A stretch of 44,655 bases of DNA, taken from Macrostomum lignano. Lineage: Eukaryota. Below are positions 14,220-44,655 of the stretch, piece after piece. Made by a program: the position numbers and the translations under genes. The stretch covers positions 1 to 44,655 of the forward strand of contig NIVC01000167.1 in assembly GCA_002269645.1 (NCBI GenBank), given 5' to 3'. The notes below the pieces were generated by a model, which ran no database searches, was not told the DNA's origin, and saw only the letters and a list, made by a program, of their open reading frames with translations. Numbering within the stretch: the stretch's first letter is position 1; each line of letters opens with the position of its first letter.

Positions 14220-14280
14220 GTTGGACCTGCAGCTCTGGCTTGCGATAGCTTCTGACCAACCCGGCAGTTGTGTGGGTTGG

Positions 14281-22300: not shown

Positions 22301-25300
22301 TCATACATAGACGCTTATCGTGTCATGAAATCCCGCAAGCGCCGCTTGAAGTTGCTTCAGTCGAGGCCGGCAGTCCGGTCGATAATGCCAGCAGCTGTGC
22401 ATGATGGAGAATCTGAAATGTGTTAAAACCATCGACACAGCCTGATGGCTCCACATCTTTCCATCGCGTTTTCGAGAGGACAGGCGGTGTACATATTTGA
22501 CAGCATTTTTTGCATTATCTGCGAGCTTAAATAGAAGTAGTGCCTCAAGTTCGATTCTGACTACTTGAAATAGAGAATAAACCTCACAGCTGGTCCGGAC
22601 AGTTGGTCGGCTTCGTCAATCTGAAGCCTTGGCGCAGATGGCGGCTCATCTCCAGCGGGTCAACTCGACTGTACGGCTGCTGGCACCTGGTGATGAGCTC
22701 CCAAAGCGTCACTCCCAGCGACCAAATGTCGGAGGCTGGCGAGAACTTTCGCTCGATCAGGGCTTCGACGGACAGCCACTTGACTGGTCGGCTGTCGCCG
22801 TCCCCTGTGCACTCGTAGTCCGCCGGGAACAGGTCCTTGGCCAGGGCCGCGTCCCCGATGCGCACCGTGCCGTCCGCCGTCAGGCTGCGGAGAGTGGCCA
22901 GGAGCAAGCTCTAGCAATGGACGCACTTTGTTATAAAGCTCTCAAAAAATCCTCACACGCAGTTGCGACAGGCGAGATCCCTGTGCACCACTTGCATGCG
23001 GTGCAGATAGGCCAGACCCTTGCCGATCTGCACCGCCATGTGCAGCAGCTGCTGTGTGGACAGGGTCTGGCGGAGGTAGTCGGGGGCGTACGAATTCTTA
23101 GTCTGCATGCGAGCGATACAGGGAGTTCTAGATAAGACCATCCGGATGGGGAAACCGACCGGTCACATCCATTTTCCCTATTCTATCAAGATCAATAGAT
23201 TTACTAGGCAGAGCTCCCGTGTTATTCAAGTGGCTTTCAAACGTTTTTTTCCTTGCCACAAAGCTGTCATTTTCATCACGCATTCGTCTATGCTTTCCGT
23301 GTTCTCAAAAATGGAATGAAGTTTTGTGTATGCACTAGCAGGATAAGCTTATACAGAACCGAGCTTATTAAGGTTACAACAGATCGCCCTACTAACGAGT
23401 AGTAGGAAAGGACTGCAAAGCGAATCTTTTATTGTGTTGCACAAAGAGTTGCACACTGTAGATTCGAACGCTTGCCTACCGGTACTGGTGACTTCTTGTT
23501 CAAATCCCAGTTTTCGGGGGAAACATATTTAACAAGGTTAAAAAGAACTGAATTCCTACGAGTACTTAATAGGTAAGAAATTTGGGTCAATGAGACTTTA
23601 TCGCAAGTGAATTGCCCCGCGAGTGAAATTTCCCACTAGTGATTTGCTCGCGGAATGCATTAGCTTAGCAAGTAATTACCAGCGAAATTAAAAATCCTGC
23701 CTGTCATAACGTGACTCTCTGCTGCAACACCTGATGAAATTAAAAAATTGACATGCAGTTGCTATCGAATCACTATCGGATTGACTTATTGAGCATTCCA
23801 CGAAATATTGACCAGCTACTCCACTCCAGACAGATAATTCTAATACCAAGGACAACTTTAGTAGAAGGACGCAACACTCGAAATCTATGGTAAATGTTTT
23901 GAAGGCCACTTTTCGCCCAAAAATACACTACAGAGATTGGAGGTTTTAATTTTTCAGCACAAAAATTGTTATTGCTTTCGATAGGAGGCAGACGCAGTGT
24001 TCATCTTTTGATATGTTGTGCCTTTCTTATTGCTCTATCGATATTTATAAAGCTTTTCGTTCAGAAAATTAGGATTCTACCCTAATTTTTAATCCTACTT
24101 ACATTTGCATTTCTCCTGTGCCTAAAAATCATTAAAATGGCACGGCTTAGCTCATTGGTTTATGAATCCATTTTGTCATTCTTAGCTGACTGTAACAATA
24201 TGTGTAACAGAGATGATGAGGCCTTCAAAACATTTACCATAGATTTCGAGTGTTGCGTCCTATATACCGTGGCGCACAATGAATTAGGACCACCAAGTAA
24301 AATTATTTTTTTTGGCATACTGGTCTTTAAACTAAATTTAAGTACTAAATTGGAAGTAAAACTTGTAGGAATATTACTTTATGTTATTTATTTAGTATTT
24401 TGGCTCAATTTCCAGCAGTGTTTAGTTCAAAAAGCTGATATTTGAATGGGAAGTACAGTTTTAGGTTTAACATTGAAATAAGACCATATATAAATACTTG
24501 GGAAATAAGCCAAGCAAATGTCACTGATATCAAACTAACTACTCTAATACTTCGTAGCAGGTCCTTTTGACTTAATCACACAGCATTGCACCGCCTAGGC
24601 ATGCTGTCCACCAGCTTCTGGCACACTTCTGCCGCAATGGCAGCCCACGAGTCCTCAATGACACGGTACAGCTGACCAAGGGAAGCTGGCTGCTGCCTCT
24701 GGATGTCCGTCCCGCTCAACCCAGTTCCACCATTTCTTAATCGGATTGAGGTCTGGTGACTGCGCTGGCCAGTCCATGGTGCGGATGTTGTTCTCAGCAA
24801 GCCATGCATTCACAAACTTGGAGGTTTGCTTCGGATGGTTGTCCTGCTGAAACTGCCAGCTGTTCACTACACCCAGTGGCAGCGCAACTACTGCCTCTTG
24901 TAGGTGGCTACCGAGGATGCCACGGTACTTCTGACTGTCCATGACGCCCTCAATGCGAGTTATTGGCCCAGGCCCAGCTCACAATCCAGCCCACACCATG
25001 ACATTACCACCTCCATGCTTCATGGTACCAACGGTGCACCTGGGATCGAGTTCCTCACCAGCTCGGTGGCGCACATATTGGCGGCCGTCAGAATCAGTGC
25101 GGGAAATTTGCTCTCGTCACTCCAGTTGGTCTTGACCCAGTCCTGGGGTGTCTAGCTTGCATGCTGCTTCGGCCAGTTCAAGCGCCGCTTCCCGGTTTTT
25201 GTCGGAGATAAACGGCTTCTTCCTAGCAATGCGGCCTTGCAGTCCAGCAGCTACCAGACGGCGGCGGACAGTCATGGGGTGCAGCTGGACACCACTGGGC

Positions 25301-28300
25301 ACCAGAAGTTCACGGCTGATGTCCACAGCGGTGAGCCGACGGTTTGACTCGGACACTCGCACAATTCGTCGATCCAGTCCGTGGTCAGTTTTCGGTGCCC
25401 TGCCAGGTCTTGGGGCACAGCCTGTGCTGCCAGTGCTGCTGAGGCGCCTGAGGGCTTGCTGGACGCGTGTTTTTTTACTTTCCCAGCTGCGTGGCTTTGG
25501 CTCGCTGGGAAACTCCTTGGTCGAACAGGATCTTTATTTTGCTACACGACTCAGGCGATAGAGCTCTGCCTTTTCCCATTCTGGGAGAGTTCAAGATCAT
25601 TTTTTGCTTGGAGTAGTATTGAATTAGCTGTTTCGAACTTGCAGAATCAGCAGGGCCACTTTTAATTGCACATTTAGCCCAACTGTTTAGGTGGTCTTAT
25701 TACTGTGTGACTTATCAAATTCAAAAGTGAGACAAGGGACTCCAATTAAACACACTAAATTGCAAGTAATTACCCAACACATCACTAATTTAATTGATTG
25801 ATACCATGGTTATCTATAACTGATTAGATTAAAATGCTCCCGAAATCTGTTTAGGTTAGGAAATTAAAAGTTAGGTGGTCGTAATTCATTGTGCGCCACT
25901 GTATATGTTACTTGAGTAGTCCTTGTCTAATACTCCATGAGCGACAGTCTACGGGAATGCGGGGCTGTAATGCTAACGCTCACGTGGTCCGGCCGGCCGG
26001 CGCGGCTGTCGATCAAGCGCAGCTTCAGGTTGCCGCCAGCCGGGTTGGGGTAGATCAGGTGCGGCCTAGGATCGCCGGGCGGCATGGTCGAGGCAAGCAG
26101 CGGATTGACGTGCCTGTGCTGCAGGCCGGCCAGCAGGACTCCCGACTGCGACACGGCGCTCAGCTGGTCAAGCCGGGCAGCCTCTGCTCGTGCAGCGATG
26201 AAGGAAAAACGGCAGCTGGGCCTTTCATTGTCCGGTTTAACTGGACAGCTTACTCGACCTCCCATTAAGTTTTTTGAGTTCAGGACCTAGAGTGAGCACA
26301 CCTGTGCTTCTCTTCAAGACCTAGTGTGAGCACACCTGTGCTTGTCTTCAGGACCTAGTGTGAGCACACCTGTGCTTGTCTTCAGGACCTAGTGTGAGCG
26401 CACCTGTGCTTGTCTTCAGGACCTAGTGTGAGCACACCTGTGCTTGTCTTCAGGACCTAGTGTGAGCACACCTGTGCTTCTCTTCAAGACCTAGTGTGAG
26501 CACACCTGTGCTTGTCTTCAGGACCTAGTGTGAGCACACCTGTGCTTGTCTTCAGGACCTAGTGTGAGCACACCTGTGATTTTCATACAGGGCCAGTGTG
26601 AGCACACCTGTGCTTTCATACAGGGCCAGAGTGAGCAAATGAGCAACCATCTAGCCGCAACTTGATGGGTTGCTGAACACCAGAACCCATCTCTTAATTG
26701 CCTGCAGCCGGTCATTAATTAGATATTTATCTTGAGTTTACAGTTATGCTGTTCTAAATTGACTTGGCCAGCGAAAACAAAACTGCTCTGCTTTTTTAAC
26801 ATCGATTTATCAGTGGATTAATAACTTTTTCCGTGTTGGAATGGGAGTTGGAGTTGCGGAGTTGGAACTGAGGTGCTGTAATTGGGGCTGGCGGAGTTGA
26901 AGTGCTGGAATCGGGGTGCTGGAATCTGGGTGGCTGGAATTGGGATGCTGGAATTGGGGTGCTGGAATTGGGGTGCTGGAACCTGGGTGGCTGGAATTGG
27001 GATGCTGGAATTGGGGTGCTGGATTTGGGGTGCTGGAATTGGGGTGCTGGAATCTGGGTGCTGGAATTGGGGTGCTGGAACCTGAGTGGCTGGAATTGGG
27101 ATGCTGGAATTGGGGTGCTGGAATTGGGGTGCTGAAACCTGGGTGGCTGGAATTGGGATGCTGGAATTGGGGTGCTGGATTTGGGGTGCTGGAATTGGGG
27201 TGCTGGAACCTGGGTGGCTGGAATCTGGGTGCTGGAATTGGGGTGCTGGAATCTCGGCGCTGGAATTGGGGTGCTGGAATCTGGGTGGCTGGAATTGGGG
27301 TGCTGGAACCTGGGTGGCTGAAATTCGGATGCCGGAATTGGGGTGCTGGAACCTGGGTGGCTGGAATTGGGATGCTGGAATTGGGGTGCTGGATTTGGGG
27401 TGCTGGAATTGGGGTGCTGGAATCTGGGTGCTGGAATTGGGATGCTATAATCTGGGTGGCTGGAATTGGGGTGCTGGAATCTGGGTGCTGGAATTGGCAT
27501 GCTGGAATTGGGGTGCTGGAATTAGGGTGTTGGAATCGAAGTGTTGAAGTTGGGTGGCGTTGGAATATGCTGTTAAAATTTGGAGTTAGTTTTAATCAGC
27601 ATCCCCAATCATCGATTACCATACATGTAATTATGAACGTTAATTGGCTAAACCGAAATCGCCCTCGATTCAGCCACTCACCGACCACTGTCTTGATCAG
27701 CACCTCCTCGCGCCCACTCTTGACGATGTTCCTACCACGGCCGTGGGGCGGCTCCCAGCTGCCTCGGTAAACCAGACCGTAGCAGCCTGCAGTGTGGCGG
27801 GCGTGCTTCAGAGTTCTCACGCAGCCAGCACCTGAAATATCTGGACCGAAGTCAATATATCTGGTCACAGGGCTCACCTTCCATTAGGGTGTACTCAAGG
27901 CTGACTGTATGCCACGCGGTTTGAACCTCTAACAGAATGTCCCGAGGGCTACTGATGCGGCGTTGCACTATGGGTGAGGCGCCCAACTGGTGGCTGGGCT
28001 GGTCTGCAGGCGGTGGAGCGAGGATAGGGATTTAATATTAGATATTAGACATCTACCTTAGACATTTACTCTGAGCCTTAGACATCTACTCTGAGCCTTA
28101 GACATCTACTCTGAGCCTTAGACATCTACTCTGAGCCTTAGACATCTACTCTGAGCCTTAGACATCTACTCTGAGCCTTAGACATCTACTTTGAGCCTAA
28201 TGGGCTGTAGTCTAGTGATTAGAGCGTCGGACTCACGATTTAAAGGTCGGGGATTCCATTCTCGACCCACTCGGAACAATTTGTGTCCTTGAGCAAGACA

Positions 28301-31300
28301 CAACTCTGCATTGCTTCAGTTCACCCAGCTGTAAAATGGGTGCCAGCATTAGCTGGGGTAATTGAGGCTGTGTGTGGCGACCCCCCAGTCCTTGGACTGA
28401 ACAGCCGTACGCAGCCTTCAGATGCGCCGAGCAATAACTGCGGCTGAGCTGTTGGTTGTACATCTGACCAACTGGGGCAGGTGCAATCAATTGTTATTAT
28501 TATTTTCTCTTAAATAAGGCTGAGACATTTTCTCTCAGCCTTAGACATCTCTCAGCCTTGGATATCTCTCAGCCCTAGACATCTACGAGTACTCTCTTAG
28601 CCTTAGACATCTACTCTCCCAGCCTTAGACCACTACTCTGAGCCTTAGACATTCTCACTCAGACTATTTATTGTGAGTTATACACAGCTTTCAGAAATTG
28701 AATCATTAGGAGCATTCCCAGATCTATTCTCAGCGTCGTCTCACTGGAGGAGGTGGCCCTGCTGGTCAGGCTGCAGCTGTCCGACCCGTCGCTCCAAATC
28801 ACTGCCGTGCTCTGCAGCGTGCGGCCTTTTAACGCCGCCGCTTTGCCAGCCGACGCAGCTGCGGTGGCGGCGCCAGAGCTGGCTTTTTTCAAGCGGAAGC
28901 AGCGGCATAGCAGCAGGTAGGTGACCGCTGCCGCGGCCAGCAGCGCCACAAGCAACACAAACAGCAGCGGGAGCAGCAGTCTCAATGCCGCTGGCGTGCG
29001 CACCGCGGCAGCCGCCTGATTGGTTTCAGAGAGAACTGACTGCTCTCGTGTCTCTGCTGTAGACTTTTTATCTGACTTTGGCTTCTCTTCTGTAAATTTT
29101 TCAATGAAATCAAGCTTTAAATTCATTGAGAGAGTTTGACGTATTTTTGTATTTAATATACGAGTGTAATTGGTAGTTAAATTCTGGCTTTTGCTCTCCA
29201 AGATACTTCAATTTTTATCACAACACCCTTCCCAATACCCCAGTTCCCTTCCCACCACCCCAGTTCCCTTCCCATCCCCTCCAATTCTCCTCCCACCACC
29301 CAGTTCCCTTCCCACCCCTCCAATTCTCCTCCCACCACCCAGTTCCCTTCCCACCCCTCCAGTTCTCCTCCCACCACCCCAGTTCCTCTTCGGCTACCCC
29401 AGTTCCCTTCCTACCGCTCAGCAAACTCCGGCGATTCCCGGCAGTCCGGCCGCACAATTTTCGCCTGCGAATCCGCAGTTGCACAGGCGGCTCGCCAGGC
29501 CGTAGGGTGACATTCAGCAGGATGGCCAGCGGCACCTCGGCGAGCGCTGCCCCAGTGCAGGGCAGCGAGGCGTCGAATGCTGCAATTTAAACGAAAGCGA
29601 TTGTAAAAAATTCGGCATAGCTTTCGTTCTGAGAAAAATATTCGTCTACTGGCCAATAATTTTGCTCCCTTTCCGTCAACCTTTGCAGTCGTTATCACCT
29701 TCTGTCTCCTTTACGTCTTTCGACGCCAAGAATTGCCTTATTTTTCGAAGCTTTATTGGATAGAAAAGCAGGGCGAAGTACATGTGCTTCCATTTTGATT
29801 TGCTTTTCTCTTGGCTGTCACACCTGGCGCCTCTCCGATCCCCCACATTAAACCAGGACACACACACTATTCACCTTAGGCCGCTCAATCCCTCAGTCTC
29901 GTGTCCTCAGTCCCTCAGTTTCAGTCCCTCAGCCTCAGTCCCTCAGTCTCGTGTCTTCAGTCATTAGCCCCTCAGTCCCTTTTGTCCCACAGTTACTCAA
30001 TTCCAGTATCGTGTACTCAGTCCCTCAACCTCAGTCCCTCAGTACCTCAGTCCCTCAGTCTCATGTCCTCACTCCCAGTCTCATGTCCTCAATCCCTCAG
30101 TCTCACTTCCTCAATCTCTCAGTCTTAGATCCTCAACCCAGTATCCCTACTTGAGTCGGCGTGCGGCACGAATCCCTGGGCAGCAATGCTTAACACTGGC
30201 GAGCCCATGGCTTTCTGGTCCTCCACCGAGAAGCCGATCGAGTAGGGCATCTGAAATTATTGTATCGCTTACGAATAGATTACGCGTTCACTGCTAAAAC
30301 TAGACGAATTAATTAAATAATTACTTCACGTTGACTGCGAGCTACATTGCGAGCTCAATTATATTATATTGTCTCCAAAGTGGTATCAAATGCGAAAGCA
30401 AAAGTGGCAAAATATGCCATTATTGGTGAAAAAGCGAGTTTTTTGTTGTTCCGAAACAGTTGGCTTTTCTTCCAACCGCCGATAGCCCACTCGCCTCGTG
30501 GCCGGCCCTGTTGGCCCAGCGAAATCGCAGCTTTGCCACCGACAGTGGCACGGAGATGCTGAAGCCGAGCGCGTATTTGTTCACCGTGCCATCGAACACG
30601 TAAAAGACCCTGGAGGCGTTGCCTGATCCTGCGGGTTGAGCCAGTCTGCCTTTCATAGGGCCTGTCCTTGTGTCTGTCTCAGTGTCTGACCGGGTGTCTG
30701 TCATGTCTGTCCTAGTGTTTTTGTGTCTATCCTAGTGTTTTTGTGTCTGTCCTAGTGTCTCTCCGGGTGTCTGTCCTAGTGTTTCTGTGCCTGTCCTAGT
30801 GTTTCTGTGCCTATCCTAGTGTTTTTGTGTCTATCCTAGTGTTTTTGTGTCTATCCTAGTGTTCTTGTGTCTATCCTAGTGTTTTTGTGTCTATCCTAGT
30901 GTTTCTGTGCCTGTCCTAGTGTTTCTGTGCCTGTCCTAGTGTTTCTGTGCCTATCCTAGTGTTTTTGTGTCTATCCTAGTGTTTCTGTGCCTATCCTAGT
31001 GTTTTTGTGTCTATCCTAGTGTTTTTGTGTCTATCCTAGTGTTTCTGTGTCTGTCCTAGTGTCTCTCCGGGTGTCTGTCCTAGTGTTTCTGTGCCTATCC
31101 TAGTGTTTTTGTGTCTATCCTAGTGTTTTTGTGTCTATCCTAGTGTTTTTGTGTCTGTCCTAGTGTCTCTCCGGGTGTCTGTCCTAGTGTTTCTGTGCCT
31201 GTCCTAGTGTTTCTGTGCCTATCCTAGTGTTTTTGTGTCTATCCTAGTGTTTTTGTGTCTATCCTAGTGTTCTTGTGTCTATCCTAGTGTTTTTGTGTCT

Positions 31301-31914
31301 ATCCTAGTGTTTCTGTGCCTGTCCTAGTGTTTCTGTGCCTGTCCTAGTGTTTCTGTGCCTTTCCTAGTGTTTTTGTGTCTATCCTAGTGTTTCTGTGCCT
31401 ATCCTAGTGTTTTTGTGTCTGTCCTAGTGTCTCTCCGGGTGTCTGTCCTAGTGTTTCTGTGCCTATCCTAGTGTTTTTGTGTCTGTCCTAGTGTTTTTGT
31501 GTCTGTCCTAGTGTCTCTCCGGGTGTCTGTCCTAGTGTTTCTGTGCCTATCCTAGTGTTTTTGTGTCTGTCCTAGTGTTTTTGTGTCTATCCTATTGTTT
31601 TAGTGTCTCCGGGTGTCTGTCCTAGTGTTCTAGTGTTTGTCCGTGGTGTCTGTCCTAGTGTTCGTGTTTGTCCGGGGTGTCTGTCTTAGTGTCTATCATA
31701 TTGTTTTAGTGTCCGTCCTAGTGTCTATCCAACTTAGTTTCTGTTAGCATTAGTGAGGCTGATTCACAGCCAGATTAATAAGAAACTTACTGACAGCAGC
31801 TCTCATATCATTGCGGGTCACATAGAGGTCAAGCAGTCCAGCACCGAGAGGCAAACTCTCGAGCAGCCCTAGTAGAAGCAGCATCATCATCAGCGGTGCC
31901 AGCTTCTCAGCCAT
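22301..31914 (-). CDS. RYK: RYK/Derailed-family receptor tyrosine pseudokinase (signal peptide, WIF domain, TM, kinase), ~600 aa. 11 exons: 31791-31914, 30495-30622 (or -30628), 30151-30250, 29415-29579, 28745-29035 (or -29056), 27878-28003, 27682-27786, 25984-26183, 22957-23102, 22588-22884, 22301-22412.
   Basis: Signal MAEKLAPLMMMLLLLGLL; WIF motifs LDLYVT, VFYV..GTVNKYALGFS..VP...LRFRW, AMGSP.LSI...G.VP, LPCTG....V...LLNVT...LRIRRRKLC; TM LLLPLLFVLLVALLAAAAVTYLLL; kinase LMEGCYGLVYRG, LIKTV, GGNLK, HMAVQIGKGLAYLH, HRDLACRN, GDAALAKDLFPADY, RPVKWLS.EAL, SDIWSLGV.LWEL; C-terminal SVYV* (PDZ-binding, like RYK). Exon phases are consistent throughout; two acceptors are ambiguous. Confidence 0.92.
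23866..24261. mobile_element. ~396-bp MITE-like element with 41-42-bp perfect terminal inverted repeats, in RYK intron 8
   Basis: ggacgcaacactcgaaatctatggtaaatgttttgaaggcc (23867-23907) is the exact reverse complement of 24220-24260. AT-rich non-coding interior; TSD not clear. Confidence 0.7.
24267..25901 (-). mobile_element. Full-length (1635 bp) decayed Tc1/mariner DNA transposon in RYK intron 8
   Basis: TA flanks at 24265-24266 and 25902-25903; ~28-bp TIRs ccgtggcgcacaatgaattaggaccacc and (rc) cagtggcgcacaatgaattacgaccacc; internal transposase remnant. Confidence 0.92.
24544..25579 (-). pseudogene. Frameshifted Tc1 (DD34E) transposase
   Basis: MGKGRALS start, GRAPKT, TVRRRL...G..GR.ARKKPFIS, WSDESKF, KHGGGNVMVW, FQQDNHPK, WPAQSPDLNPIK, MPRRCNAV, ..KGPATKY*. 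Several frameshifts; the catalytic E is replaced by K. Confidence 0.92.
26282..26625. repeat. 34-bp minisatellite (aggacctagtgtgagcacacctgtgcttgtcttc)n, ~9-10 copies, RYK intron 7
   Basis: Directly visible. Confidence 0.96.
26885..27545. repeat. G-rich ~14-15-bp minisatellite (ggggtgctggaatt / ctgggtggctggaat), RYK intron 7
   Basis: Directly visible; it explains the LELGCWNWGAG and PAPQFQHPNSS ORFs. Confidence 0.93.
28050..28200. repeat. 20-bp minisatellite (gacatctactctgagcctta)n, RYK intron 5; degenerate continuation at ~28520-28665
   Basis: Directly visible on both sides of the SINE. Confidence 0.93.
28202..28505 (+). mobile_element. tRNA-derived SINE with a CORE-like central domain and (tta)n tail
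   Basis: Head gggctgtagtctagtgattagagcgtcggactcacg...ggattccattc (A/B-box-like). Centre tgtgtccttgagcaagacac...cttcagttcacccagctgtaaaatggg resembles the CORE-SINE motif TGTGACCTTGGGCAAG...CTCAGTTT..CATCTGTAAAATGGG. Tail ttattattatt. Confidence 0.72.
29232..29414. repeat. C/T-rich repeat (cccagttcccttcccacc...ccaattctcctccca), RYK intron 4, overlapping the donor site
   Basis: Directly visible; the minus-strand donor gtaggaagggaact is itself a repeat unit. Confidence 0.85.
29885..30140. repeat. Degenerate 8-bp (cctcagtc)n repeat, RYK intron 3
   Basis: Directly visible. Confidence 0.85.
30660..31730. repeat. 20-bp minisatellite (cctagtgtttttgtgtctat)n with interspersed 24-bp variants (cctagtgtctctccgggtgtctgt), ~50 copies, RYK intron 1
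   Basis: Directly visible. Confidence 0.96.
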
Positions 31915-32936
31915 GTTAGCGCAGCCTGTTGAGGCTGAGTTGGCATCGGCATGTTGCAATTTGTTTGGATATTTGAGCAACTGCGGAGCAAATGGACTCC
32001 GCGGTTGGCTTTCCACCAATCGCCAGTCGAAAATAAAAGATCGCCGAGTCAGTTAATCCAGTTGCCTACTTCTAGTAGCTAATTGACATGTACTTTTGAA
32101 AGCCAATAATGTTGAATTACAGTTAAGAAAGCGCGCTACAGTCGCAATTCAGACCGAAGAGGCATTTTCAGTTTTTAGTTATTATTTCTCACTACATATA
32201 ACTCCAACTCCGTATCAGTTATTACAGGCGCTCTGCTCGAACTCGTTAATAAATTACCCAAATACTTCTCAGACACTACATGATTGCTACCCAGACACTG
32301 CTCGAATGCTAGTCGGAAACTACTCAGACACTACTTGGACACTACTCGGATATTACTCGGACACTACTCTGAGTACACTACACTCGTTTTGTGTGCTAAT
32401 ATCATCGGGTTATATTACGAAGAGACTAGATAGCACCTTAGCTTATTCGTTTAGTGTATGCTCGTAAGTTTCACGTTTACAAGTTAACGAACTCATTGCT
32501 TGAACATTACGGCCTATTGATGTCACTACGAAGGTAGGCTAACTTGTACGTAGACCCAGAGAAACAGGTAGAAAAAGCAGAAGCACAGTAAGACTTTCTC
32601 CCGGTTGCAAGTAAATTGCCCTTACTTTTTAACCAAAAATTTTTCCTGGATACTACGAGTACTATAAAATAAAGCATTAAAATGTCAAATACAAGGTAAA
32701 TGCAAGCTATCATTTATAGTTTCGGCTCATATGATTTTTGTTTCGGCCTGAATGTTATAAAAACCGGTTAAAAAGATTCAAACCAAAATTAGAGTAGACA
32801 GTTAAAGCAAAACTTTAATCAGCCCTCAATGCCGCAAACATGTATATTTGTTTCAGTCGATTCCGCTTATTCCGATAAAGTTAAAAAAGAGAAAGAAAAA
32901 CGGTTTCTACTCAACAGTCTGTCAAAGTAAATTTTG

Positions 32937-35900
32937 TCAGCGCTTGCCGCGACGCGACCCGCAACAGACGCCGCCGGTGGAGACTTTCGAAGACTCCGAT
33001 TTCAGCGACGGGTCAGACGAGTCGGGCCAAGCCGCGGACGGCGAAGGCGGTGGCGGCGCCAAATTCTCGCGCAGAGTTGACCATGGCTGGGCTGGCCGGG
33101 CCACAAACTGGCTCACAATGATGCGGCCGAGCAGCAGGCGGAGCGCGCCGCAGTCGGCTAACTCAGGCCGAGTCCAATTGTCAAGCAGCCAGCGCGCTCG
33201 CGCGTCCCAATCATATTCAGCAGGCCGCTCATCCTTCCTAACCGAAGCAGTGGACACCGAGTCAGCATCGGTGGAGGCGTCGTTGCTCGCGTGAACCTCT
33301 CGAATCTTGCCTTCCAAATATCGCATTGCTCGCTCCATCTGGGACTCCAGCTGAGCCCAGTCTACGGAGGTGGCTCCACGAAACTGACTAAACACAATGC
33401 GACCAAGTAGCTGGCTTTGGTCGGCGTCGCTAAGCGCGCTTATTGTGGAAACCATTGGCGCCCTTTCACTGAAGGAAGTTTTAGAGCCAGATGCAGCACC
33501 AGCTTTATTGGCTCCTGCAGCCGCTTCATCAGCACCAGCACCAGTTTTTTCAACAACAGCTTTTACGTCACCTGAACCAGAGTCATCTGCATCGGCACCA
33601 GCTTCATCGGAGTTTTCAGAGTCTGCAAACCATATTGGCCAGCACTTTGTTGATTCTCGAGAACGCTCTGAAAGTTTATCACTGTTTACTCGTATTTTTT
33701 TAGGGATGGGAAAACGCTGTTGGACTCGAAGCCACGATTCGCCATCGAAATCCGACAAATTGCGAATGCTTCGATAGGGAGAAATTGCACGGTCGACAGA
33801 TCGGCTCCTCCATCTCTTTGAAGACAAGCGCTCAACAGAAGCTGGGCGTTCAAAAACTGACACAGAGCAAAAAGAGCCAGTAGAAAATAAAGTAGACTCA
33901 TCAGACGAACCGCGCCAAAAAGCTCGACGAGAAATACTCATGCTTCGATCAGCCGAATATCCATCCTCTTGCACATCCAAGCAAAGCTGACTAAACGAAA
34001 CACTGCTGCTACCATCGAAAAATTCTGATGATTCGAAACCATCAGATAAAACGTCCACCTCCGGGTTACAAATAACATCAAGGAGAAAGCGTAACTCGTT
34101 GACAACATCCAAAAAACGAACTGTCATCCTAGAAGCTGCAAAAATATTCCTTTCCTTAAGACACCCTGCCCCATCGAGCAAGTCCAGCTGGTGTCGCACG
34201 TCTTCGTCTACTTGCTTGTCGGCCTGATCTATTTCGACGAACTTGAGTTGATCCTCTTTGAATCGGCGCTCCGCTCTTGCAATGTCGCGGCGAGCGCGCT
34301 CATCGCGACGTCGTCGTTCGCGGCGACGGTGGCTCACGAGCTCTTCTAGACGCATGGCTTCCCGCTCTCGCTCTCTCTCTGGCGCCTTCAAATCGTCTTC
34401 TTTGCACAATGAAGGAAGCTCCTCTTCGATCTCGCTGGCCTCGCGATCTTCTAATACTTTGTCGTCGAACAGGTCTATCTGGTGTCGCACTTCCTCGTCT
34501 ACCAGTACTTCTTCGTCGGCCTGAACAATCTCGTCGACCTTGAATTGATCGTCTTCGAATCGGCGCTCCGCTCTTGCAATGTCGCGGCGAGCGCGCTCAT
34601 CGCGACGTCGTCGTTCGCGGCGACGGTGGCTCACGAGCTCTTCTTGACGCGCGGCTTCTCGCTCTCGCTCCCGCTCTGGCGCCTTCAACTCGTCTTCTTT
34701 GCCCAGTGAAGGCAGATCCTCTTCGATCTCGCTGGCTTCGCGATCTTCTAATACTTTGTCATCGAACAGGTCTATCTGGCGTCGCACGTCTTCGTCTACT
34801 TGCTTGTCGGCCTGAACAATCTCGTCTACCTCGAATTCATCGTCTTCGAATCGGCGCTCCGCTCTTGCAATGTCGCGGCGAGCGCGCTCATCGCGACGTC
34901 GTCGTTCGCGGCGACGGTGGCTCACGAGCTCTTCTTGACGCGCGGCTTCTCGCTCTCGCTCCCGCTCTGGCGCCTTCAACTCGTCTTCTTTGCGCATAGG
35001 AGGCAGATCCTCTTCGATCTCGCTGGCTTCGCGATCTTCTAATACTTTGTCATCGAACAGGTCTATCTGGCGTCGCACGTCTTCGTCTACTTGCTTGTCG
35101 GCCTGAACAATCTCGTCTACCTCGAATTCATCGTCTTCGAATCGGCGCTCCGCTCTTGCAATGTCGCGGCGAGCGCGCTCATCGCGACGTCGTCGTTCGC
35201 GGCGACGGTGGCTCACGAGCTCTTCTTGACGCGCGGCTTCTCGCTCTCGCTCCCGCTCTGGCGCCTTCAACTCGTCTTCTTTGCCCAGTGAAGGCAGATC
35301 CTCTTCGATCTCGCTGTCTTCGCGATCTTCTAATACTTTGTCATCGAACAGGTCTATCTGGCGTCGCACGTCTTCGTCTACTTGCTTGTCGGCCTGAAAA
35401 ATCTCGTCTACCTCAAATTCATCGTCTTCGAATCGGCGCTCCGCCCTTGCAATGTCGCGGCGAGCGCGCTCATCGCGACGTCGTCGTTCGCGGCGACGGT
35501 GGCTCACGAGCTCTTCTTGACGCGCGGCTTCTCGCTCTCGCTCCCGCTCTGGCGCCTTCAACTCGTCTTCTTTGCGCATTGGAGGCAGATCCTCTTCGAT
35601 CTCGCTGGCCTCGCGCGCTTCTAACTCTGCGTCATCGATCAAGTCCAGCTGGTGTCGCACGTCTTCGTCTACTTGCTTGTCGGCCTGATCGATCTGATCG
35701 ACCTTGAGTTGATCCTCTTTGAATCGGCGCTCTGCTCTTGCAATTTCGCGACGAGCGCGCTCATCGCGACGTCGTCGTTCGCGGCGACGGTGGCTCACGA
35801 GCTCTTCTTGACGCGCGGCTTCTCGCTGTCGCTCTCGCTCTGGCGCCTTCAACTCGTCTTCTTCGCCCATTGGAGGTAGATCCTCTTCGATCTCGCTGGC

Positions 35901-38900
35901 CTCGCGATCTTCTAATACTTTGTCGTCGAACAGGTCTATCTGGTGTCGCACGTCTTCGTCTACTTGCTTGTCGGCCTGAACAATCTCGTCTACGTCGAAT
36001 TCATCGTCTTCGAATCGGCGCTCCGCTCTTGCAATGTCGCGGCGAGCGCGCTCATCGCGACGTCGTCGTTCGCGGCGACGGTGGCTCACGAGCTCTTCTT
36101 GACGCGCGGCTTCTCGCTCTCGCTCCCGCTCTGGCGCCTTCAACTCGTCTTCTTTGCGCATTGGAGGCAGATCCTCTTCAATCTCGCTGGCTTCGCGATC
36201 TTCTAATACTTTGTCGTCGAACAGGTCTATCTGGTGTCGCACGTCCTCGTCTACCAGTACTTCTTCGTCGGCCTGAACAATCTCGTCGACCTTGAATTGA
36301 TCGTCTTCGAATCGGCGCTCCGCCCTTGCAATGTCGCGGCGAGCGCGCTCATCGCGACGTCGTCGTTCGCGGCGACGGTGGCTCACGAGCTCTTCTTGAC
36401 GCGCGGCTTCTCGCTCTCGCTCCCGCTCTGGCGCCTTCAACTCGTCTTCTTTGCGCATTGGAGGCAGATCCTCTTCGACGTCGCTATCCTCGCGATCTTC
36501 TAACTCTGCGTCATCGATCAAGTCCAGCTGGTGTCGCACGTCTTCGTCTACTTGCTTGTCGGCCTGATCGATCTGATCGACCTTGAGTTGATCCTCTTTG
36601 AATCGGCGCTCTGCTCTTGCAATTTCGCGGCGAGCGCGCTCATTGCGACATCGTCGTTCGCGGCGACGGTGGCTCACGAGCTCTTCTTGACGCGCGGCTT
36701 CTCGCTCTCGCTCTCGCTCTGGCGCCTTCAACTCGTCTTCTTCGCATTGGAGGCAGATCCTCTTCGATCTCGCTGGCCTCGCGATCTTCTAATACTTTGT
36801 CGTCGAACAGGTCTATCTGGTGTCGCACGTCTTCGTCTACTTGCTTGTCGGCCTGAACAATCTCGTCTACGTCGAATTGATCGTCTTCGAATCGGCGCTC
36901 CGCTCTTGCAATGTCGCGGCGAGCGCGCTCATCGCGACGTCGTCGTTCGCGGCGACGGTGGCCCACGAGCTCTTCTTGACGCGCGGCTTCTCGCTGTCGC
37001 TCTCGCTCTGGCGCCTTCAACTTGTCTTCTTCGCCCATTGGAGGTAGATCCTCTTCGATCTCGCTGGCCTCGCGATCTTCTAATACTTTGTCGTCGAACA
37101 GGTCTATCTGGTGTCGCACGTCCTCGTCTACCAGTACTTCTTCGTCGGCCTGAACAATCTCGTCGACCTTGAATTGATCGTCTTCGAATCGGCGCTCCGC
37201 TCTTGCAATGTCGCGGCGAGCGCGCTCATCGCGACGTCGTCGTTCGCGGCGACGGTGGCTCACGAGCTCTTCTTGACGCGCGGCTTCTCGCTCTCGCTCC
37301 CGCTCTGGCGCCTTCAACTCGTCTTCTTTGCGCATTGGAGGCAGATCCTCTTCGATCTCGCTGGCCTCGCGATCTTCTAATACTTTGTCGTCGAACAGGT
37401 CTATCTGGTGTCGCACGTCCTCGTCTACCAGTACGTCTTCGTCGGCCTGATCGATCTGATCGACCTTGAATTGATCCTGTTTGAATCGGCGCTTCGCCCT
37501 TGCAATGTCGCGGCGAGCGCGCTCATCGCGACGTCGTCGTTCGCGGCGACGGTGGCTCCGAGCTCTTCTTGACGCGCGGCTTCTCGCTCTTGCTCCCGCT
37601 CTGGCGCCTTCAACTCGTCTTCTTTGCGCATTGGAGGCAGATCCTCTTCGATCTCGCTGGCCTCGCGATCTTCTAATACTTTGTCTTCGAACAGGTATAT
37701 CTGGTGTCGCACGTCCTCGTCTACCAGTACTTCTTCGTCGGCCTGAACAATCTCGTCGACCTTGAATTGATCGTCTTCGAATCGGCGCTCCGCCCTTGCA
37801 ATGTCGCGGCGAGCGCGCTCATCGCGACGTCGTCGTTCGCGGCGACGGTGGCTCACGAGCTCTTCTTGACGCGCGGCTTCTCGCTCTCGCTCCCGCTCTG
37901 GCGTCTTCAACTCGTCTTCTTTGCGCATTGGAGGCAGATCCTCTTCGACTCGCTCCTCGCGATCTTCTAACTCTGCGTCATCGATCAAGTCCAGCTGGTG
38001 TCGCACGTCTTCGTCTACTTGCTTGTCGGCCTGATCGATCTGATCGACCTTGATTGATCCTCTTTGAATCGGCGCTCTGCTCTTGCAATTTCGCGGCGAG
38101 CGCGCTCATCGCGACGTCGTCGTTCGCGGCGACGGTGGCTCACGAGCTCTTCTTGACGCGCGGCTTCTCGCTCTCGCTCCGCTCTGGCGCCTTCAACTCG
38201 TCTTCTTCGCATTGGAGGCAGATCCTCTTCGATCTCGCTGGCCTCGCGATCTTCTAATACTTTGTCGTCGAACAGGTCTATCTGGTGTCGCACGTCTTCG
38301 TCTACTTGCTTGTCGGCCTGAACAATCTCGTCTACGTCGAATTGATCGTCTTCGAATCGGCGCTCCGCTCTTGCAATGTCGCGGCGAGCGCGCTCATCGC
38401 GACGTCGGCGTTCGCGGCGACGGTGGCTCACGAGCTCTTCTTGACGCGCGGCTTCTCGCTCTCGCTCCCGCTCTGGCGCCTTCAACTCGTCTTCTTTGCG
38501 CATTGGAGGCAGATCCTCTTCGACCTCGCTATCCTCGCGATCTTCTAACTCTGCGTCATCGATCAAGTCCAGATGGTGTCGCACGTCTTCGTCTACTTGC
38601 TTGTCGGCCTGATCGATCTGATCGACCTTGAGTTGATCCTCTTTGAATCGGCGCTCCGCTCTTGCAATTCGCGGCGAGCGCGCTCATCGCGACGTCGTCG
38701 TTCGCGGCGACGGTGGCTCACGAGCTCTTCTTGACGCGCGGCTTCTCGCTGTCGCTCTCGCTCTGGCGCCTTCAACTCGTCTTCTTTCGCATTGGAGGCA
38801 GATCCTCTTCGATCTCGCTGGCCTCGCGATCTTCTAATACTTTGTCGTCGAACAGGTCTATCTGGTGTCGCACGTCCTCGTCTACCAGTACTTCTTCGTC

Positions 38901-41900
38901 GGCCTGAACAATCTCGTCGACCTTGAATTGATCGTCTTCGAATCGGCGCTCCGCTCTTGCAATGTCGCGGCGAGCGCGCTCATCGCGACGTCGTCGTTCG
39001 CGGCGACGGTGGCTCACGAGCTCTTCTTGACGCGCGGCTTCTCGCTCTCGCTCCCGCTCTGGCGCCTTCAACTCGTCTTCTTTGCGCATTGGAGGCAGAT
39101 CCTCTTCGATCTCGCTGGCCTCGCGATCTTCTAATACTTTGTCGTCGAACAGGTCTATCTGGTGTCGCACGTCCTCGTCTACCAGTACGTCTTCGTCGGC
39201 CTGATCGATCTGATCGACCTTGAATTGATCCTGTTTGAATCGGCGCTTCGCCCTTGCAATGTCGCGGCGAGCGCGCTCATCGCGACGTCGTCGTTCGCGG
39301 CGACGGTGGCTCACGAGCTCTTCTTGACGCGCGGCTTCTCGCTCTCGCTCCCGCTCTGGCGCCTTCAACTCGTCTTCTTTGCGCATTGGAGGCAGATCCT
39401 CTTCGATCTCGCTGGCCTCGCGATCTTCTAATACTTTGTCGTCGAACAGGTCTATCTGGTGTCGCACGTCCTCGTCTACCAGTACTTCTTCGTCGGCCTG
39501 AACAATCTCGTCGACCTTGAATTGATCGTCTTCGAATCGGCGCTCCGCCTTGCAATGTCGCGGCGAGCGCGCTCATCGCGACGTCGTCGTTCGCGGCGAC
39601 GGTGGCTCACGAGCTCTTCTTGACGCGCGGCTTCTCGCTCTCGCTCCCGCTCTGGCGCCTTCAACTCGTCTTCTTTGCGCATTGGAGGCAGATCCTCTTC
39701 GATCTCGCTATCCTCGCGATCTTCTAACTCTGCGTCATCGATCAGTCAGCTGGTGTCGCACGTCTTCGTCTACTTGCTTGTCGGCCTGATCGATCTGATC
39801 GACCTTGAGTTGATCCTCTTTGAATCGGCGCTCCGCTCTTGCAATTTCGCGGCGAGCGCGCTCATTGCGACGTCGTCGTTCGCGGCGACGGTGGCTCACG
39901 AGCTCTTCTTGACGCGCGGCTTCTCGCTCTCGCTCCGCTCTGGCGCCTTCAACTCGTCTTCTTGCGCATTGGAGGCAGATCCTCTTCGATCTCGCTGGCC
40001 TCGCGATCTTCTAATACTTTGTCGTCGAACAGGTCTATCTGGTGTCGCACGTCCTCGTCTACCAGTACTTCTTCGTCGGCCTGAACAATCTCGTCGACCT
40101 TGAATTGATCGTCTTCGAATCGGCGCTCCGCTCTTGCAATGTCGCGGCGAGCGCGCTCATCGCGACGTCGTCGTTCGCGGCGACGGTGGCTCACGAGCTC
40201 TTCTTGACGCGCGGCTTCTCGCTCTCGCTCCCGCTCTGGCGCCTTCAACTCGTCTTCTTTGCGCATTGGAGGCAGATCCTCTTCGATCTCGCTGGCCTCG
40301 CGATCTTCTAATACTTTGTCGTCGAACAGGTCTATCTGGTGTCGCACGTCCTCGTCTACCAGTACTCTTCGTCGGCCTGACAATCTCGTCGACCTTGAAT
40401 TGATCCTGTTTGAATCGGCGCTCCGCTCTTGCAATGTCGCGGCGAGCGCGCTCATCGCGACGTCGTCGTTCGCGGCGACGGTGGCTCACGAGCTCTTCTT
40501 GACGCGCGGCTTCTCGCTCTCGCTCTGGCTCTGGCGCCTTCAACTCGTCTTCTTTGCGCATTGGAGGCAGCTCCTCTTCGATCTCGCTGGCCTCGCGATC
40601 TTCTAATACTTTGTCGTCGAACAGGTCTATCTGGTGTCGCACGTCCTCGTCTACCAGTACTTCTTCGTCGGCCTGAACAATCTCGTCGACCTTGAATTGA
40701 TCGTCTTCGAATCGGCGCTCCGCCTTGCAATGTCGCGGCGAGCGCGCTCATCGCGACGTCGTCGTTCGCGGCGACGGTGGCTCACGAGCTCTTCTTGACG
40801 CGCGGCTTCTCGCTCTCGCTCCCGCTCTGGCGCCTTCAACTCGTCTTCTTTGCGCATTGGAGGCAGATCCTCTTCGATCTCGCTGGCCTCGCGATCTTCT
40901 AATACTTTGTCGTCGAACAGGTCTATCTGGTGTCGCACGTCCTCGTCTACCAGTACTTCTTCGTCGGCCTGAACAATCTCGTCGACCTTGAATTGATCGT
41001 CTTCGAATCGGCGCTCCGCTCTTGCAATGTCGCGGCGAGCGCGCTCATCGCGACGTCGTCGTTCGCGGCGACGGTGGCTCACGAGCTCTTCTTGACGCGC
41101 GGCTTCTCGCTCTCGCTCCCGCTCTGGCGCCTTCAACTCGTCTTCTTTGCGCATTGGAGGCAGATCCTCTTCGATCTCGCTGGCCTCGCGATCTTCTAAT
41201 ACTGCGTCATCGAACAGGTCATCTGGTGTCGCACGTCTTCGTCTACTTGCTTGTCGGCCTGATCGATCTGTCGACCTTGAATTGATCCTCTTTGAATCGG
41301 CGCTCGCTCTTGCAATTCGCGGCGAGCGCGCTCATCGCGACGTCGTCGTTCGCGGCGACGGTGGCTCACGAGCTCTTCTTGACGCGCGGCTTCTCGCTCT
41401 CGCTCCCGCTCTGGCGCCTTCAACTCGTCTTCTTTGCGCATTGGAGGCAGATCCTCTTCGATCTCGCTGGCCTCGCGATCTTCTAATACTTTGTCGTCGA
41501 ACAGGTCTATCTGGTGTCGCACGTCCTCGTCTACCAGTACTTCTTCGTCGGCCTGAACAATCTCGTCGACCTTGAATTGATCCTGTTTGAATCGGCGCTC
41601 CGCTCTTGCAATGTCGCGGCGAGCGCGCTCATCGCGACGTCGTCGTTCGCGGCGACGGTGGCTCACGAGCTCTTCTTGACGCGCGGCTTCTCGCTCTCGC
41701 TCCCGCTCTGGCGCCTTCAACTCGTCTTCTTTGCGCATTGGAGGCAGATCCTCTTCGATCTCGCTGGCCTCGCGATCTTCTAATACTTTGTCGTCGAACA
41801 GGTCTATCTGGTGTCGCACGTCTTCGTCTACTTGCTTGTCGGCCTGATCGATCTGATCGACCTTGAATTGATCCTCTTTGAATCGGCGCTCCGCTCTTGC

Positions 41901-44655
41901 AATGTCGCGGCGAGCGCGCTCATCGCGACGTCGTCGTTCGCGGCGACGGTGGCTCACGAGCTCTTCTTGACGCGCGGCTTCTCGCTCTCGCTCCCGCTCT
42001 GGCGCCTTCAACTCGTCTTCTTTGCGCATTGGAGGCAGATCCTCTTCGATCTCGCTGGCCTCGCGATCTTCTAATACTTTGTCGTCGAACAGGTCTATCT
42101 GGTGTCGCACGTCCTCGTCTACCAGTACTTCTTCGTCGGCCTGAACAATCTGTCGACCTTGAATTGATCGTTTGAATCGGCGCTTCGCCCTTGCAATGTC
42201 GCGGCGAGCGCGCTCATCGCGACGTCGTCGTTCGCGGCGACGGTGGCTCACGAGCTCTTCTTGACGCGCGGCTTCTCGCTCTCGCTCCCGCTCTGGCGCC
42301 TTCAACTCGTCTTCTTTGCGCATTGGAGGCAGCTCCTCTTTGATCTCGCTGGCCTCGCGATCTTCTAATACTTTGTCGTCGAACAGGTCTATCTGGTGTC
42401 GCACGTCTTCGTCTACTTGCTTGTCGGCCTGAACAATCTCGTCGACCTTGAATTGATCGTCTTCGAATCGGCGCTCCGCTCTTGCAATGTCGCGGCGAGC
42501 GCGCTCATCGCGACGTCGTCGTTCGCGGCGACGGTGGCTCACGAGCTCTTCTTGACGCGCGGCTTCTCGCTCTCGCTCCCGCTCTGGCGCCTTCAACTCG
42601 TCTTCTTTGCGCATTGGAGGCAGATCCTCTTCGATCTCGCTGGCCTCGCGATCTTCTAATACTTTGTCGTCGAACAGGTCTATCTGGTGTCGCACGTCCT
42701 CGTCTACCAGTACTTCTTCGTCGGCCTGAACAATCTCGTCGACCTTGAATTGATCGTCTTCGAATCGGCGCTCCGCCTTGCAATGTCGCGGCGAGCGCGC
42801 TCATCGCGACGTCGTCGTTCGCGGCGACGGTGGCTCACGAGCTCTTCTTGACGCGCGGCTTCTCGCTCTCGCTCCCGCTCTGGCGCCTTCAACTCGTCTT
42901 CTTTGCGCATTGGAGGCAGATCCTCTTCGATCTCGCTGGCCTCGCGATCTTCTAATACTTTGTCGTCGAACAGGTCTATCTGGTGTCGCACGTCCTCGTC
43001 TACCAGTACTTCTTCGTCGGCCTGAACAATCTCGTCGACCTTGAATTGATCGTCTTCGAATCGGCGCTCCGCTCTTGCAATGTCGCGGCGAGCGCGCTCA
43101 TCGCGACGTCGTCGTTCGCGGCGACGGTGGCTCACGAGCTCTTCTTGACGCGCGGCTTCTCGCTCTCGCTCCCGCTCTGGCGCCTTCAACTCGTCTTCTT
43201 TGCGCATTGGAGGCAGATCCTCTTCGATCTCGCTGGCCTCGCGATCTTCTAATACTTTGTCGTCGAACAGGTCTATCTGGTGTCGCACGTCCTCGTCTAC
43301 CAGTACTTCTTCGTCGGCCTGAACAATCTCGTCGACCTTGAATTGATCGTTTGAATCGGCGCTCCGCCTTGCAATGTCGCGGCGAGCGCGCTCATCGCGA
43401 CGTCGTCGTTCGCGGCGACGGTGGCTCACGAGCTCTTCTTGACGCGCGGCTTCTCGCTCTCGCTCCCGCTCTGGCGCCTTCAACTCGTCTTCTTTGCGCA
43501 TTGGAGGCAGATCCTCTTCGATCTCGCTGGCCTCGCGATCTTCTAATACTTTGTCGTCGAACAGGTCTATCTGGTGTCGCACGTCCTCGTCTACCAGTAC
43601 TTCTTCGTCGGCCTGAACAATCTCGTCGACCTTGAATTGATCGTCTTCGAATCGGCGCTCCGCTCTTGCAATGTCGCGGCGAGCGCGCTCATCGCGACGT
43701 CGTCGTTCGCGGCGACGGTGGCTCACGAGCTCTTCTTGACGCGCGGCTTCTCGCTCTCGCTCCCGCTCTGGCGCCTTCAACTCGTCTTCTTTGCGCATTG
43801 GAGGCAGATCCTCTTCGATCTCGCTGGCCTCGCGATCTTCTAATACTTTGTCGTCGAACAGGTCTATCTGGTGTCGCACGTCCTCGTCTACCAGTACTTC
43901 TTCGTCGGCCTGAACAATCTCGTCGACCTTGAATTGATCGTCTTCGAATCGGCGCTCCGCCTTGCAATGTCGCGGCGAGCGCGCTCATCGCGACGTCGTC
44001 GTTCGCGGCGACGGTGGCTCACGAGCTCTTCTTGACGCGCGGCTTCTCGCTCTCGCTCCCGCTCTGGCGCCTTCAACTCGTCTTCTTTGCGCATTGGAGG
44101 CAGATCCTCTTCGATCTCGCTGGCCTCGCGATCTTCTAATACTTTGTCGTCGAACAGGTCTATCTGGTGTCGCACGTCCTCGTCTACCAGTACTTCTTCG
44201 TCGGCCTGAACAATCTCGTCGACCTTGAATTGATCGTCTTCGAATCGGCGCTCCGCCCTTGCAATGTCGCGGCGAGCGCGCTCATCGCGACGTCGTCGTT
44301 CGCGGCGACGGTGGCTCACGAGCTCTTCTTGACGCGCGGCTTCTCGCTCTCGCTCCCGCTCTGGCGCCTTCAACTCGTCTTCTTTGCGCATTGGAGGCAG
44401 CTCCTCTTTGATCTCGCTGGCCTCGCGATCTTCTAATACTTTGTCGTCGAACAGGTCTATCTGGTGTCGCACGTCCTCGTCTACCAGTACTTCTTCGTCG
44501 GCCTGAACAATCTCGTCGACCTTGAATTGATCGTCTTCGAATCGGCGCTCCGCCCTTGCAATGTCGCGGCGAGCGCGCTCATCGCGACGTCGTCGTTCGC
44601 GGCGACGGTGGCTCACGAGCTCTTCTTGACGCGCGGCTTCTCGCTCTCGCTCCCG
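32937..44655 (-). CDS. 3' part of a giant charged-repeat protein: ~35 copies of a 97-99-aa E/D/R-rich unit followed by a ~410-aa unique C-terminus. The N-terminus is beyond the window; frameshifts occur above ~36700.
   Basis: ORF 32937-36731 (1264 aa) runs from the repeats into unique sequence without a stop, and upstream fragments (e.g. 41196-42695, 42704-43879, 43888-44616) encode the same unit. Units are 291/297 nt. GC-richness drops immediately after the TGA. Confidence 0.8.
34172..44655 (-). repeat. Coding tandem array of 297/291-bp units
   Basis: Shadow ORFs recur at 297-nt (38865/39162) and 291-nt (34800/35091) spacing. Unit: RHQIDLFDDKVLEDREASEIEEDLPPMRKEDELKAPEREREREAARQEELVSHRRRERRRRDERARRDIARAERRFEDDQFKVDEIVQADEEVLVDEDV. 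Confidence 0.97.

Follow-up and report, generated by a model that had tools for sequence, protein, structure and literature searches.

What does a tandem array of nearly identical, highly charged units encode when it runs off the end of the sequence? This question is posed by the right-hand part of a 44,655-nucleotide stretch of the Macrostomum lignano genome (assembly GCA_002269645.1, contig NIVC01000167.1, positions 1 to 44,655; hereafter the window), in which at least 35 coding-type repeats on the minus strand are followed by a unique open reading frame (ORF) of 414 codons. In the reading that we prefer, and to which we give roughly even chances, array and unique tail make up the final coding exon, a very long one, of a giant gene confined to M. 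lignano, whose product would be a polyampholyte rod or scaffold. That the array is coding is very probable, and that its product serves specifically as a spacer or scaffold is a more tentative suggestion.

The repeat unit and its reading frame

Tandem Repeats Finder detects a single array with a period of 297 bp and 94% matches between its head-to-tail copies (Table 1), and a 16-mer that is invariant across the array recurs 36 times, at spacings of 297 bp (11 times), 291 bp (8 times), 294 bp and 288 bp as well as at distances that are not multiples of three. Since the array runs off the end of the window, its copy number is a lower bound and the 5′ side of the gene lies beyond the window. The coding sense is the minus strand, on which the consensus unit reads MRKEDELKAPEREREREAARQEELVSHRRRERRRRDERARRDIARAERRFEDDQFKVDEIVQADEEVLVDEDVRHQIDLFDDKVLEDREASEIEEDLPP; this is the one open frame among the six circular frames of the unit, stops interrupting all the others (per unit, 5 and 1 in the two remaining minus-strand frames and 1, 1 and 3 in those of the plus strand). 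Alignment of the units separates three types: one of 297 bp, one of 291 bp that lacks 6 bp (...ADKQVDEDV...), and a divergent one of 291 bp (...KEDQLKVDQIDQADKQ...LDLIDDAELEDRED...).

The 99-residue consensus unit contains 35 Asp and Glu and 24 Arg and Lys (charged fraction 0.60, net charge -11), and these charges are laid out in blocks, residues ~27-49 being net positive and the ~50 residues that follow net negative. Arg accounts for 20% of the unit, Lys and Gln for 4% each and Pro for 3%, and the unit has neither Cys nor an N-glycosylation sequon (N-x-S/T). Three overlapping R-x-[KR]-R sites (RERR, RRRR, RARR) form one cluster per consensus unit, an ATG is present in each unit within PPMRKED, and the peptides VDEIVQADEEVLVDEDVR, HQIDLFDDK and EASEIEEDLPPMR are contained in the units. 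An earlier note on this DNA, made by a model from the letters and their open frames, had described at least 35 copies of a blocky polyampholyte of 97-99 residues, with a hand count of about 35 D/E and 24 R/K; the repeat finder, the 16-mer spacing and the consensus translation agree with this description, as do the unit composition and the array, and the hand count is exact for the consensus.

The argument that an open frame in the unit proves coding was rejected, since dinucleotide shuffling of the unit alone leaves at least one of the six frames open in 56% of cases. The E/R-rich frame, however, passes in phase into the unique 414-codon ORF before it stops at 32940-32942, and this ORF stays open in 0 of 5,000 shuffles. 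The repeats do not lie within an intron of the 3′ exon, an arrangement that the earlier note had itself named as a possible refutation; the array is in phase with the unique ORF. Moreover, the 75 distinct substitutions among the window units are distributed 33/10/32 over codon positions 1, 2 and 3, a depletion of position 2 that differs from mutation-class-matched random placement at P = 0.0003, and stop-creating substitutions number 0 in 35 units against 3.1 expected (P = 0.04), with neither signal seen in the other two frames. Amino acid replacements mostly stay within E/D/K/Q/N. Variation in unit length tends to preserve the frame. The window shows this in its 6-bp variant; in a related locus, L001 (on contig NIVC01002625.1 of the Mlig_3_7 assembly, carrying the predicted protein P0001 and treated here as a second assembly), 18 units fall short of 297 bp by 7 nt or more, and the lengths of 13 of these are divisible by three. 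Finally, transcript-derived gene models sit on the array in Mlig_3_7, P0001 being BOX15_Mlig012748g2, and the annotation of that assembly was built from RNA-seq (PMC5730564).

A non-coding satellite, open by chance and lying beside a small unrelated gene, would fit the frequency with which shuffled units remain open, the broken frame in the assembly and a genome that is 15% simple and tandem repeats (PMC5730564). We nevertheless consider it very improbable, given a frame in phase with the 414-codon ORF, substitutions in the window array that spare position 2 and create no stops, length variants that keep the frame, and transcript-based gene models on the array.

Frame-breaking deletions and the length of the open frame

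The earlier note had further claimed an ORF of more than 3,900 residues. As written, this ORF is absent: 3,904 codons is only the span, (44655-32943+1)/3, within which a three-frame scan of the assembled sequence finds the E/R frame shifting among all three minus-strand frames. The lengths of 13 of 35 units (296, 295, 290, 289 or 287 bp) are not divisible by three, and the unit alignment reveals 26 frame-breaking deletions of 1-2 nt in the array and no insertions. The longest uninterrupted frame comprises about nine units, the unique tail and the stop; a list of ORFs has it at 32937..36731.

Two explanations of these deletions have to be weighed, with very different consequences for the size of the product. 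Most likely, they are consensus artefacts of long-read assembly, in which case we infer that the array would form, in vivo, one ORF of several thousand residues. If they are real, just the 3′-proximal nine or so units and the tail (36788-32940) would be translatable, to yield a protein of up to ~1,280 residues, and the 26 units upstream would be decaying, pseudo-coding sequence; we regard this as unlikely. The sequence as given has exactly the structure that real frameshifts call for, certain deletions are common to several units (5 in the window and 17 in L001), as array homogenisation would bring about, and the codon-position bias of the window array is absent in L001.

What speaks against real frameshifts is, first, that all of the events are deletions and that they are located at or beside columns polymorphic between unit types in 25 of 26 cases, corresponding to 14 of 15 distinct positions, with qualifying columns making up 39%; unit u12 alone misses a base at four sites that distinguish the two unit types. 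Such a pattern is expected from a consensus over mixed pile-ups. Second, units u01-u34 contain 26 deletions versus 19 private substitutions, and this ratio of ~1.4:1 is implausible for natural mutation, whose spectra it misses by far, and typical of the consensus of PacBio continuous long reads (CLR). Third, none of the 35 units carries a stop-creating substitution. Fourth, the L001 array contains none of the 18 deletion-spanning 24-mers from the window array, and has deletions of its own that are more numerous and lie at other positions. Fifth, in both giant arrays of the window the frame breaks far from the unique anchor, the array studied here being intact for 2.6 kb beside it and the unrelated left-hand array likewise being clean near its anchor and broken near the contig end. 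Mlig_3_7 is a Canu assembly of PacBio CLR reads that was polished by short reads only (PMC5730564), and short reads have no unique placement in such arrays.

Predicted structure and a possible role for the product

AlphaFold2 was run from a single sequence on a 612-residue construct of two units plus the tail. In each unit it predicts one charged helix of 58-70 residues (construct residues 33-90 and 134-203), with a predicted local distance difference test (pLDDT) score of 75-89 in the E/R core, followed by an acidic amphipathic helix of 26 residues and a Pro-containing break of 13 residues, so that the unit would be ~85% helical. The RxRR cluster sits in the middle of the best-predicted helix, and the Pro linker between units (DLPPMRKEDELKAP) carries just RK. 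The tail, with 16% Ser, nine R-x-x-S sites and nine Cys, is predicted to be disordered over most of its length (pLDDT <50) and to form helices within its last ~160 residues. A 25-residue motif with the pattern LLGRI[VI][FV]SQF...W..L is present in it twice (the tail aligned to itself scores 50, and 500 shuffles average 23.2 with a standard deviation of 3.9 and a maximum of 48). A Foldseek search of the model against the PDB gave no match at E <= 0.001, as expected for a helical model with a low predicted template modelling (pTM) score.

The prediction thus bears out the claim of the earlier note that the E/R block is helical. The note had gone further and proposed a single alpha-helix (SAH), stable and ~40 residues long, and of this the helix is supported, whereas its SAH character is borderline. 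SAH propensity was scored with a Waggawagga-style proxy that uses our own unit weights instead of the published matrix, to be read against cut-offs of 0.25-0.35 (PMC5812594); it exceeds 0.25 over only ~12 residues (RRERRRRDERAR) and has its maximum, 0.35, at window 14.

These features suggest how the protein might be built. Each unit may consist of a long, highly charged helix, whose Arg-rich, net-positive centre leads into an acidic stretch, and of a second, acidic and amphipathic helix that ends in a Pro-containing hinge. Connected in series, such units would produce a semi-flexible, extensible polyampholyte rod, the basic and acidic blocks of which could pair within or between molecules and so make it a spacer or a scaffold, and the Ser-rich, R-x-x-S-rich tail with its two LLGRIxxSQF helices would serve for regulation or anchoring. 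The evidence leans slightly towards an intracellular location, because Cys and N-glycosylation sequons are missing from the unit, because the tail is rich in motifs for basophilic kinases, and because passage through the secretory pathway would expose the tetrabasic runs of the unit to cutting.

Such cutting is what another explanation demands, namely that the gene encodes a secreted polyprotein, equipped with an unseen 5′ signal peptide and cleaved by furin-type proteases at RERR/RRRR/RARR once per unit to release many identical, net-acidic peptides of ~95 residues. Nematode polyprotein allergens and profilaggrin are precursors of this kind, cut at basic sites. The array resembles them in its many near-identical units of ~100 residues, each with an R-x-[KR]-R cluster that offers three overlapping sites, but there is no homology, and its basic cluster is central to the helix that is predicted with most confidence and is not at the Pro linker. 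The absence of Cys and of sequons from the unit also counts against secretion, known flatworm secreted repeat proteins being Cys-rich (PMC6410801), as do the R-x-x-S motifs of the tail, which are typical of cytoplasmic or nuclear proteins; a signal peptide is not in evidence, the 5′ end being outside both the window and L001.

On the side of secretion there is a precedent in the same species for giant secreted proteins with two successive arrays, the adhesive protein Mlig-ap2, whose core consists of 21 x 255 residues followed by 25 x 221 residues (PMC6410801). The two-array architecture is shared, L001 having at least 27 x 78 residues and then at least 45 x 99 residues; however, Mlig-ap2 is Cys-rich, positively charged and secreted and possesses vWD, TIL, LDLR and TSP1 domains, none of which was seen in the array gene. 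Overall we consider a polyprotein improbable. Were it correct, one could speculate further, since in the duo-gland model of M. lignano a negatively charged releasing factor, not yet identified, detaches the positively charged adhesive Mlig-ap1 (PMC6410801): dozens of strongly net-negative peptides of ~95 residues cleaved off in gland cells would be candidates for this factor. Charge and RxRR sites would fit, as would the species, in which giant two-array secreted proteins have their precedent. We mention this as a long shot at best.

A third explanation does without any mechanical role. Here the ERERERE...RRRERRRRDERARRD block would be an arginine-enriched mixed-charge domain combined with a nuclear localisation signal, and the protein would engage in speckle-type condensation or RNA binding. 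Speckle condensation is driven by Arg-rich mixed-charge domains that combine R with D/E (10.1101/771592, PMC9324279), and residues 10-49 of the unit fit in both composition and patterning, with RE/RD alternation and an enrichment of R in the first half of the unit. The domains of speckle proteins are, however, short and disordered, whereas the block in the array is predicted to be helical and belongs to a repeat of several thousand residues in which every unit is, over one half, amphipathic and acidic throughout. So long a product would be unusual among speckle proteins, and no RS, RRM or other RNA-processing domains were found with Pfam-A. A nuclear or condensate protein is therefore rather improbable.

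How, then, does the proposed rod compare with known charged repeat proteins? SAHs such as those of myosin X and VI, caldesmon and INCENP act as spacers and constant-force springs (PMC4571873, PMC5812594, PMC4183817). The array unit shares with ER/K-type SAHs a charged, hydrophobic-poor helix that is predicted with good confidence, but its opposite charges at i,i+3 and i,i+4 are dense enough for the usual cut-off along ~12 residues only, its core is rich in R runs (net +7 in 16 residues) and not charge-balanced, and its helix leads into another that is acidic and amphipathic, with hydrophobic residues forming a heptad-like seam. A titin PEVK-type spring (P/E/V/K-rich, ~28-residue, non-helical) is not matched by a unit so low in Pro and Lys, so rich in Arg and so largely helical.

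Trichohyalin and similar proteins contain very long arrays of short, E/R-rich, helical units that arose by tandem duplication under concerted evolution. The present array is likewise a long series of charged, E/R-rich units with predicted helicity, yet it has no sequence similarity to trichohyalin, its units are much longer and poor in Gln, and their charges are split into basic and acidic halves instead of being mixed; any counterpart of the N-terminal S100 EF-hand pair of such proteins would lie upstream of both the window and L001. The array gene would work like E/R-rich helical repeat proteins and yet is a member of none of the compared families; membership is denied because homology is lacking and the charge pattern differs, any head domains or signal peptides lying beyond the window.

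Several observations weigh against the giant rod or scaffold gene that we favour. Evidence of the dN/dS type (nonsynonymous versus synonymous change) is weak, as the synonymous excess in the window array is not significant (22 versus 19.1 expected). The codon-position and no-stop signals of the window array do not recur in L001, where substitutions are spread 21/19/21 over the three positions; the constraint therefore seems to be one of composition, the usual case among charged repeat proteins. The deletions are probably artefacts, but those that are shared between units (in the window a 1-nt deletion at column 57, in L001 a different one) might be genuine variants that unequal crossing-over has spread. 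The AlphaFold model, obtained from a single sequence only, has a pTM of 0.24. The SAH proxy is borderline, reaching up to 0.30 at windows 21-28 and staying below 0.25 at window 49, and no homologue offers a functional hint.

Homologues, the related locus and the genomic neighbourhood

Searches of Pfam-A found no family for the 414-residue tail or for three units, and in 871 residues of the array just a sub-threshold chance match, SIDD_N at 20.4 bits (cut-off 27), with no stretch passing alone. Proteins similar to the unit are confined to three uncharacterised M. lignano proteins, two of which are visibly read in shifted frames. The predicted proteins P0001-P0003 are fragments read in wrong frames. 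A first search for homologues of the tail returned none among the best 8,000 candidates, and an exhaustive HMMER search of 1.84 billion representatives later retrieved P0004, an M. lignano prediction discussed below, along with one spurious low-complexity match. No contigs encoding P0002, P0003 or P0004 are on record, the locus tag BOX15_Mlig012748g2 occurs in no indexed paper, and no paper describing the repeat was found. As far as databases show, the repeat gene would be an orphan restricted to Macrostomum.

The UniRef protein P0004 (3,445 residues) maps back to the window at 44652-12562 on the minus strand, with 67-100% identity per exon. It comprises ~19 units, joined by 'introns' that skip the frameshifts, the last 149 residues of the tail, a receptor kinase gene of the RYK type that lies ~1 kb downstream of the repeat gene on the same strand, and antisense sequence of three further genes, and is best described as an over-merged ab initio chimera. 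The join that it makes between tail and kinase (...CCGSR|SGNASRVFYVF...) would turn array and tail into upstream exons of the RYK-like gene. We reject this possibility and consider it scarcely credible, because the repeat ORF terminates at its own stop codon, because the RYK-like gene begins with an ATG of its own and a classic signal peptide (MAEKLAPLMMMLLLLGLL...), and because P0004 also crosses the antisense strands of the purine nucleoside phosphorylase (PNP), CAP and KDM8 genes. Repeat gene and RYK-like kinase are two separate genes.

L001 extends the view upstream. Its 297-bp array begins at ~7317, contains 45 full units and runs off the end of the locus; upstream of it, and likewise on the plus strand, come ~1 kb of an E/R/K-rich linker of degenerate units and, before that, a second array of 234-bp units, each encoding an acidic 78-residue sequence, PDERGLLQEHEAFDKMYVYAEECVSWEEEAAHFEEERVPPALAREEELWRREEKKHFFEAVEEEAKKKPSAEEADLPV. 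The copies in this second array are 99% identical, and two of its frames stay open for more than 6 kb. The acidic frame, not the R/S/T-rich alternative, matches the downstream array. The NCBI gene calls on the 78-residue array follow the R/S/T-rich frame (their start at 961 is in phase with the ORF from 10). A match of the 78-residue array to EF-hand_15 was disregarded, for its 29.7 bits over the whole protein are summed over repeats and no single stretch passes, and the 78-residue unit has no homologue among the best 8,000 candidates. Since L001 begins inside this array, the 5′ end of the gene lies beyond the locus. Probably, to judge from the order of the repeats, the gene is a composite of at least two arrays, the 78-residue one followed by the 99-residue one, frame hops in the linker leaving a single ORF unproven.

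Within the 297-bp array of L001 (7351-20354), the first ~150 nt of the unit, from the R-block to VDEDVRH, are 100% identical in all 45 units, and every substitution and indel falls in the second half. This could reflect homogenisation by short-read polishing or a real hot/cold structure.

Table 1. Positions of the array, its subdivisions and other features (window coordinates unless L001 is given)
Feature	Position	Strand	Basis
Tandem array of coding-type units, 297 bp (99 aa) / 291 bp (97 aa), 35.7 copies	34174..44655	-	Tandem Repeats Finder, 16-mer spacing, unit alignment, consensus translation
Unique C-terminal region, 414 aa	32943..34184	-	translation, shuffles, AlphaFold, Pfam
Longest uninterrupted frame, 1,283 codons: ~9 units, unique tail, stop 32940-32942	32940..36788	-	three-frame scan
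Distal array with all 26 frame-breaking deletions (units u03-u27), probably long-read consensus errors	36789..44655	-	deletion statistics
Duplicated 25-aa motif, copy 1, LLGRIVFSQFRGATSVDWAQLESQM, tail residues 259-283	33336..33410	-	self-alignment; predicted helical
Duplicated 25-aa motif, copy 2, LLGRIIVSQFVARPAQPWSTLRENL, tail residues 351-375	33060..33134	-	self-alignment; predicted helical
234-bp (78-aa) array, >=26.8 copies, 99% identical, two frames open >6 kb	L001 1-6275	+	repeat analysis
RYK-like receptor tyrosine kinase gene	22307-31915	-	exon domains
Ordinary metazoan genes between the arrays	12412-14219, 17580-18029, 20683-21822	+	
Minisatellite stretches	10413-11220, 12069-12442, 14280-14483, 26279-27538, 28056-28198, 29226-30136, 30662-31724		

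The opposite end of the window holds a second giant coding-type array, which occupies 37-9922 on the plus strand, ends in a stop at 9960-9962 and is convergent with the array studied here. It is built from an acidic 22-residue unit, EPDAERVDQPANSAAASDTDLV, with periods of 66, 132 and 318 bp, and belongs to no Pfam family; its frame is open at 2889-9959, changes near 1170-1206 and 2890, and breaks only toward the contig end.

Between the two arrays lie ordinary metazoan genes. The RYK-like receptor tyrosine kinase gene has its ATG and signal peptide in a first exon within the ORF 31750..32019, followed by WIF exons at 30626-29392 (PF02019, 2.6e-23), a transmembrane exon at 28907-28728 and the exons of the kinase domain at 26265-22307 (PF07714, 2.2e-54), in which GDAA replaces DFG; its introns are packed with minisatellites. 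The others are a KDM8/JMJD5-like JmjC (Cupin_8) gene, one intron of which contains a 14-bp minisatellite in 31 copies (13166-13601), a CAP/CRISP plus EGF-like exon, and PNP in two exons. Minisatellites of 12-40 bp in 5-50 copies occur in many of the introns and intergenic stretches between the arrays, several of them open in multiple frames, and this abundance fits the 15% share of simple and tandem repeats in the M. lignano genome (PMC5730564).

The array also carries a caution for the analysis of such genomes: long-read consensus errors break genes of this kind, and gene predictors then fragment or over-merge them. Orphan giant repeat genes are common in the repeat-rich genome of M. lignano, and nothing yet points to a function for this one; it is nevertheless a good biophysical object, being a real and tidy repeat. 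If it is translated as one chain, few block polyampholytes in nature would be as large and regular as this chain, with a net +9 helical segment placed beside a net -9 one ~35 to >45 times, and it would provide a ready-made system for asking how helix stability, chain extension and self-association depend on charge patterning. The gene would then join the giant lineage-restricted repeat proteins that are seemingly common in Macrostomum, of which two are encoded in this window and a third array lies on the related contig.

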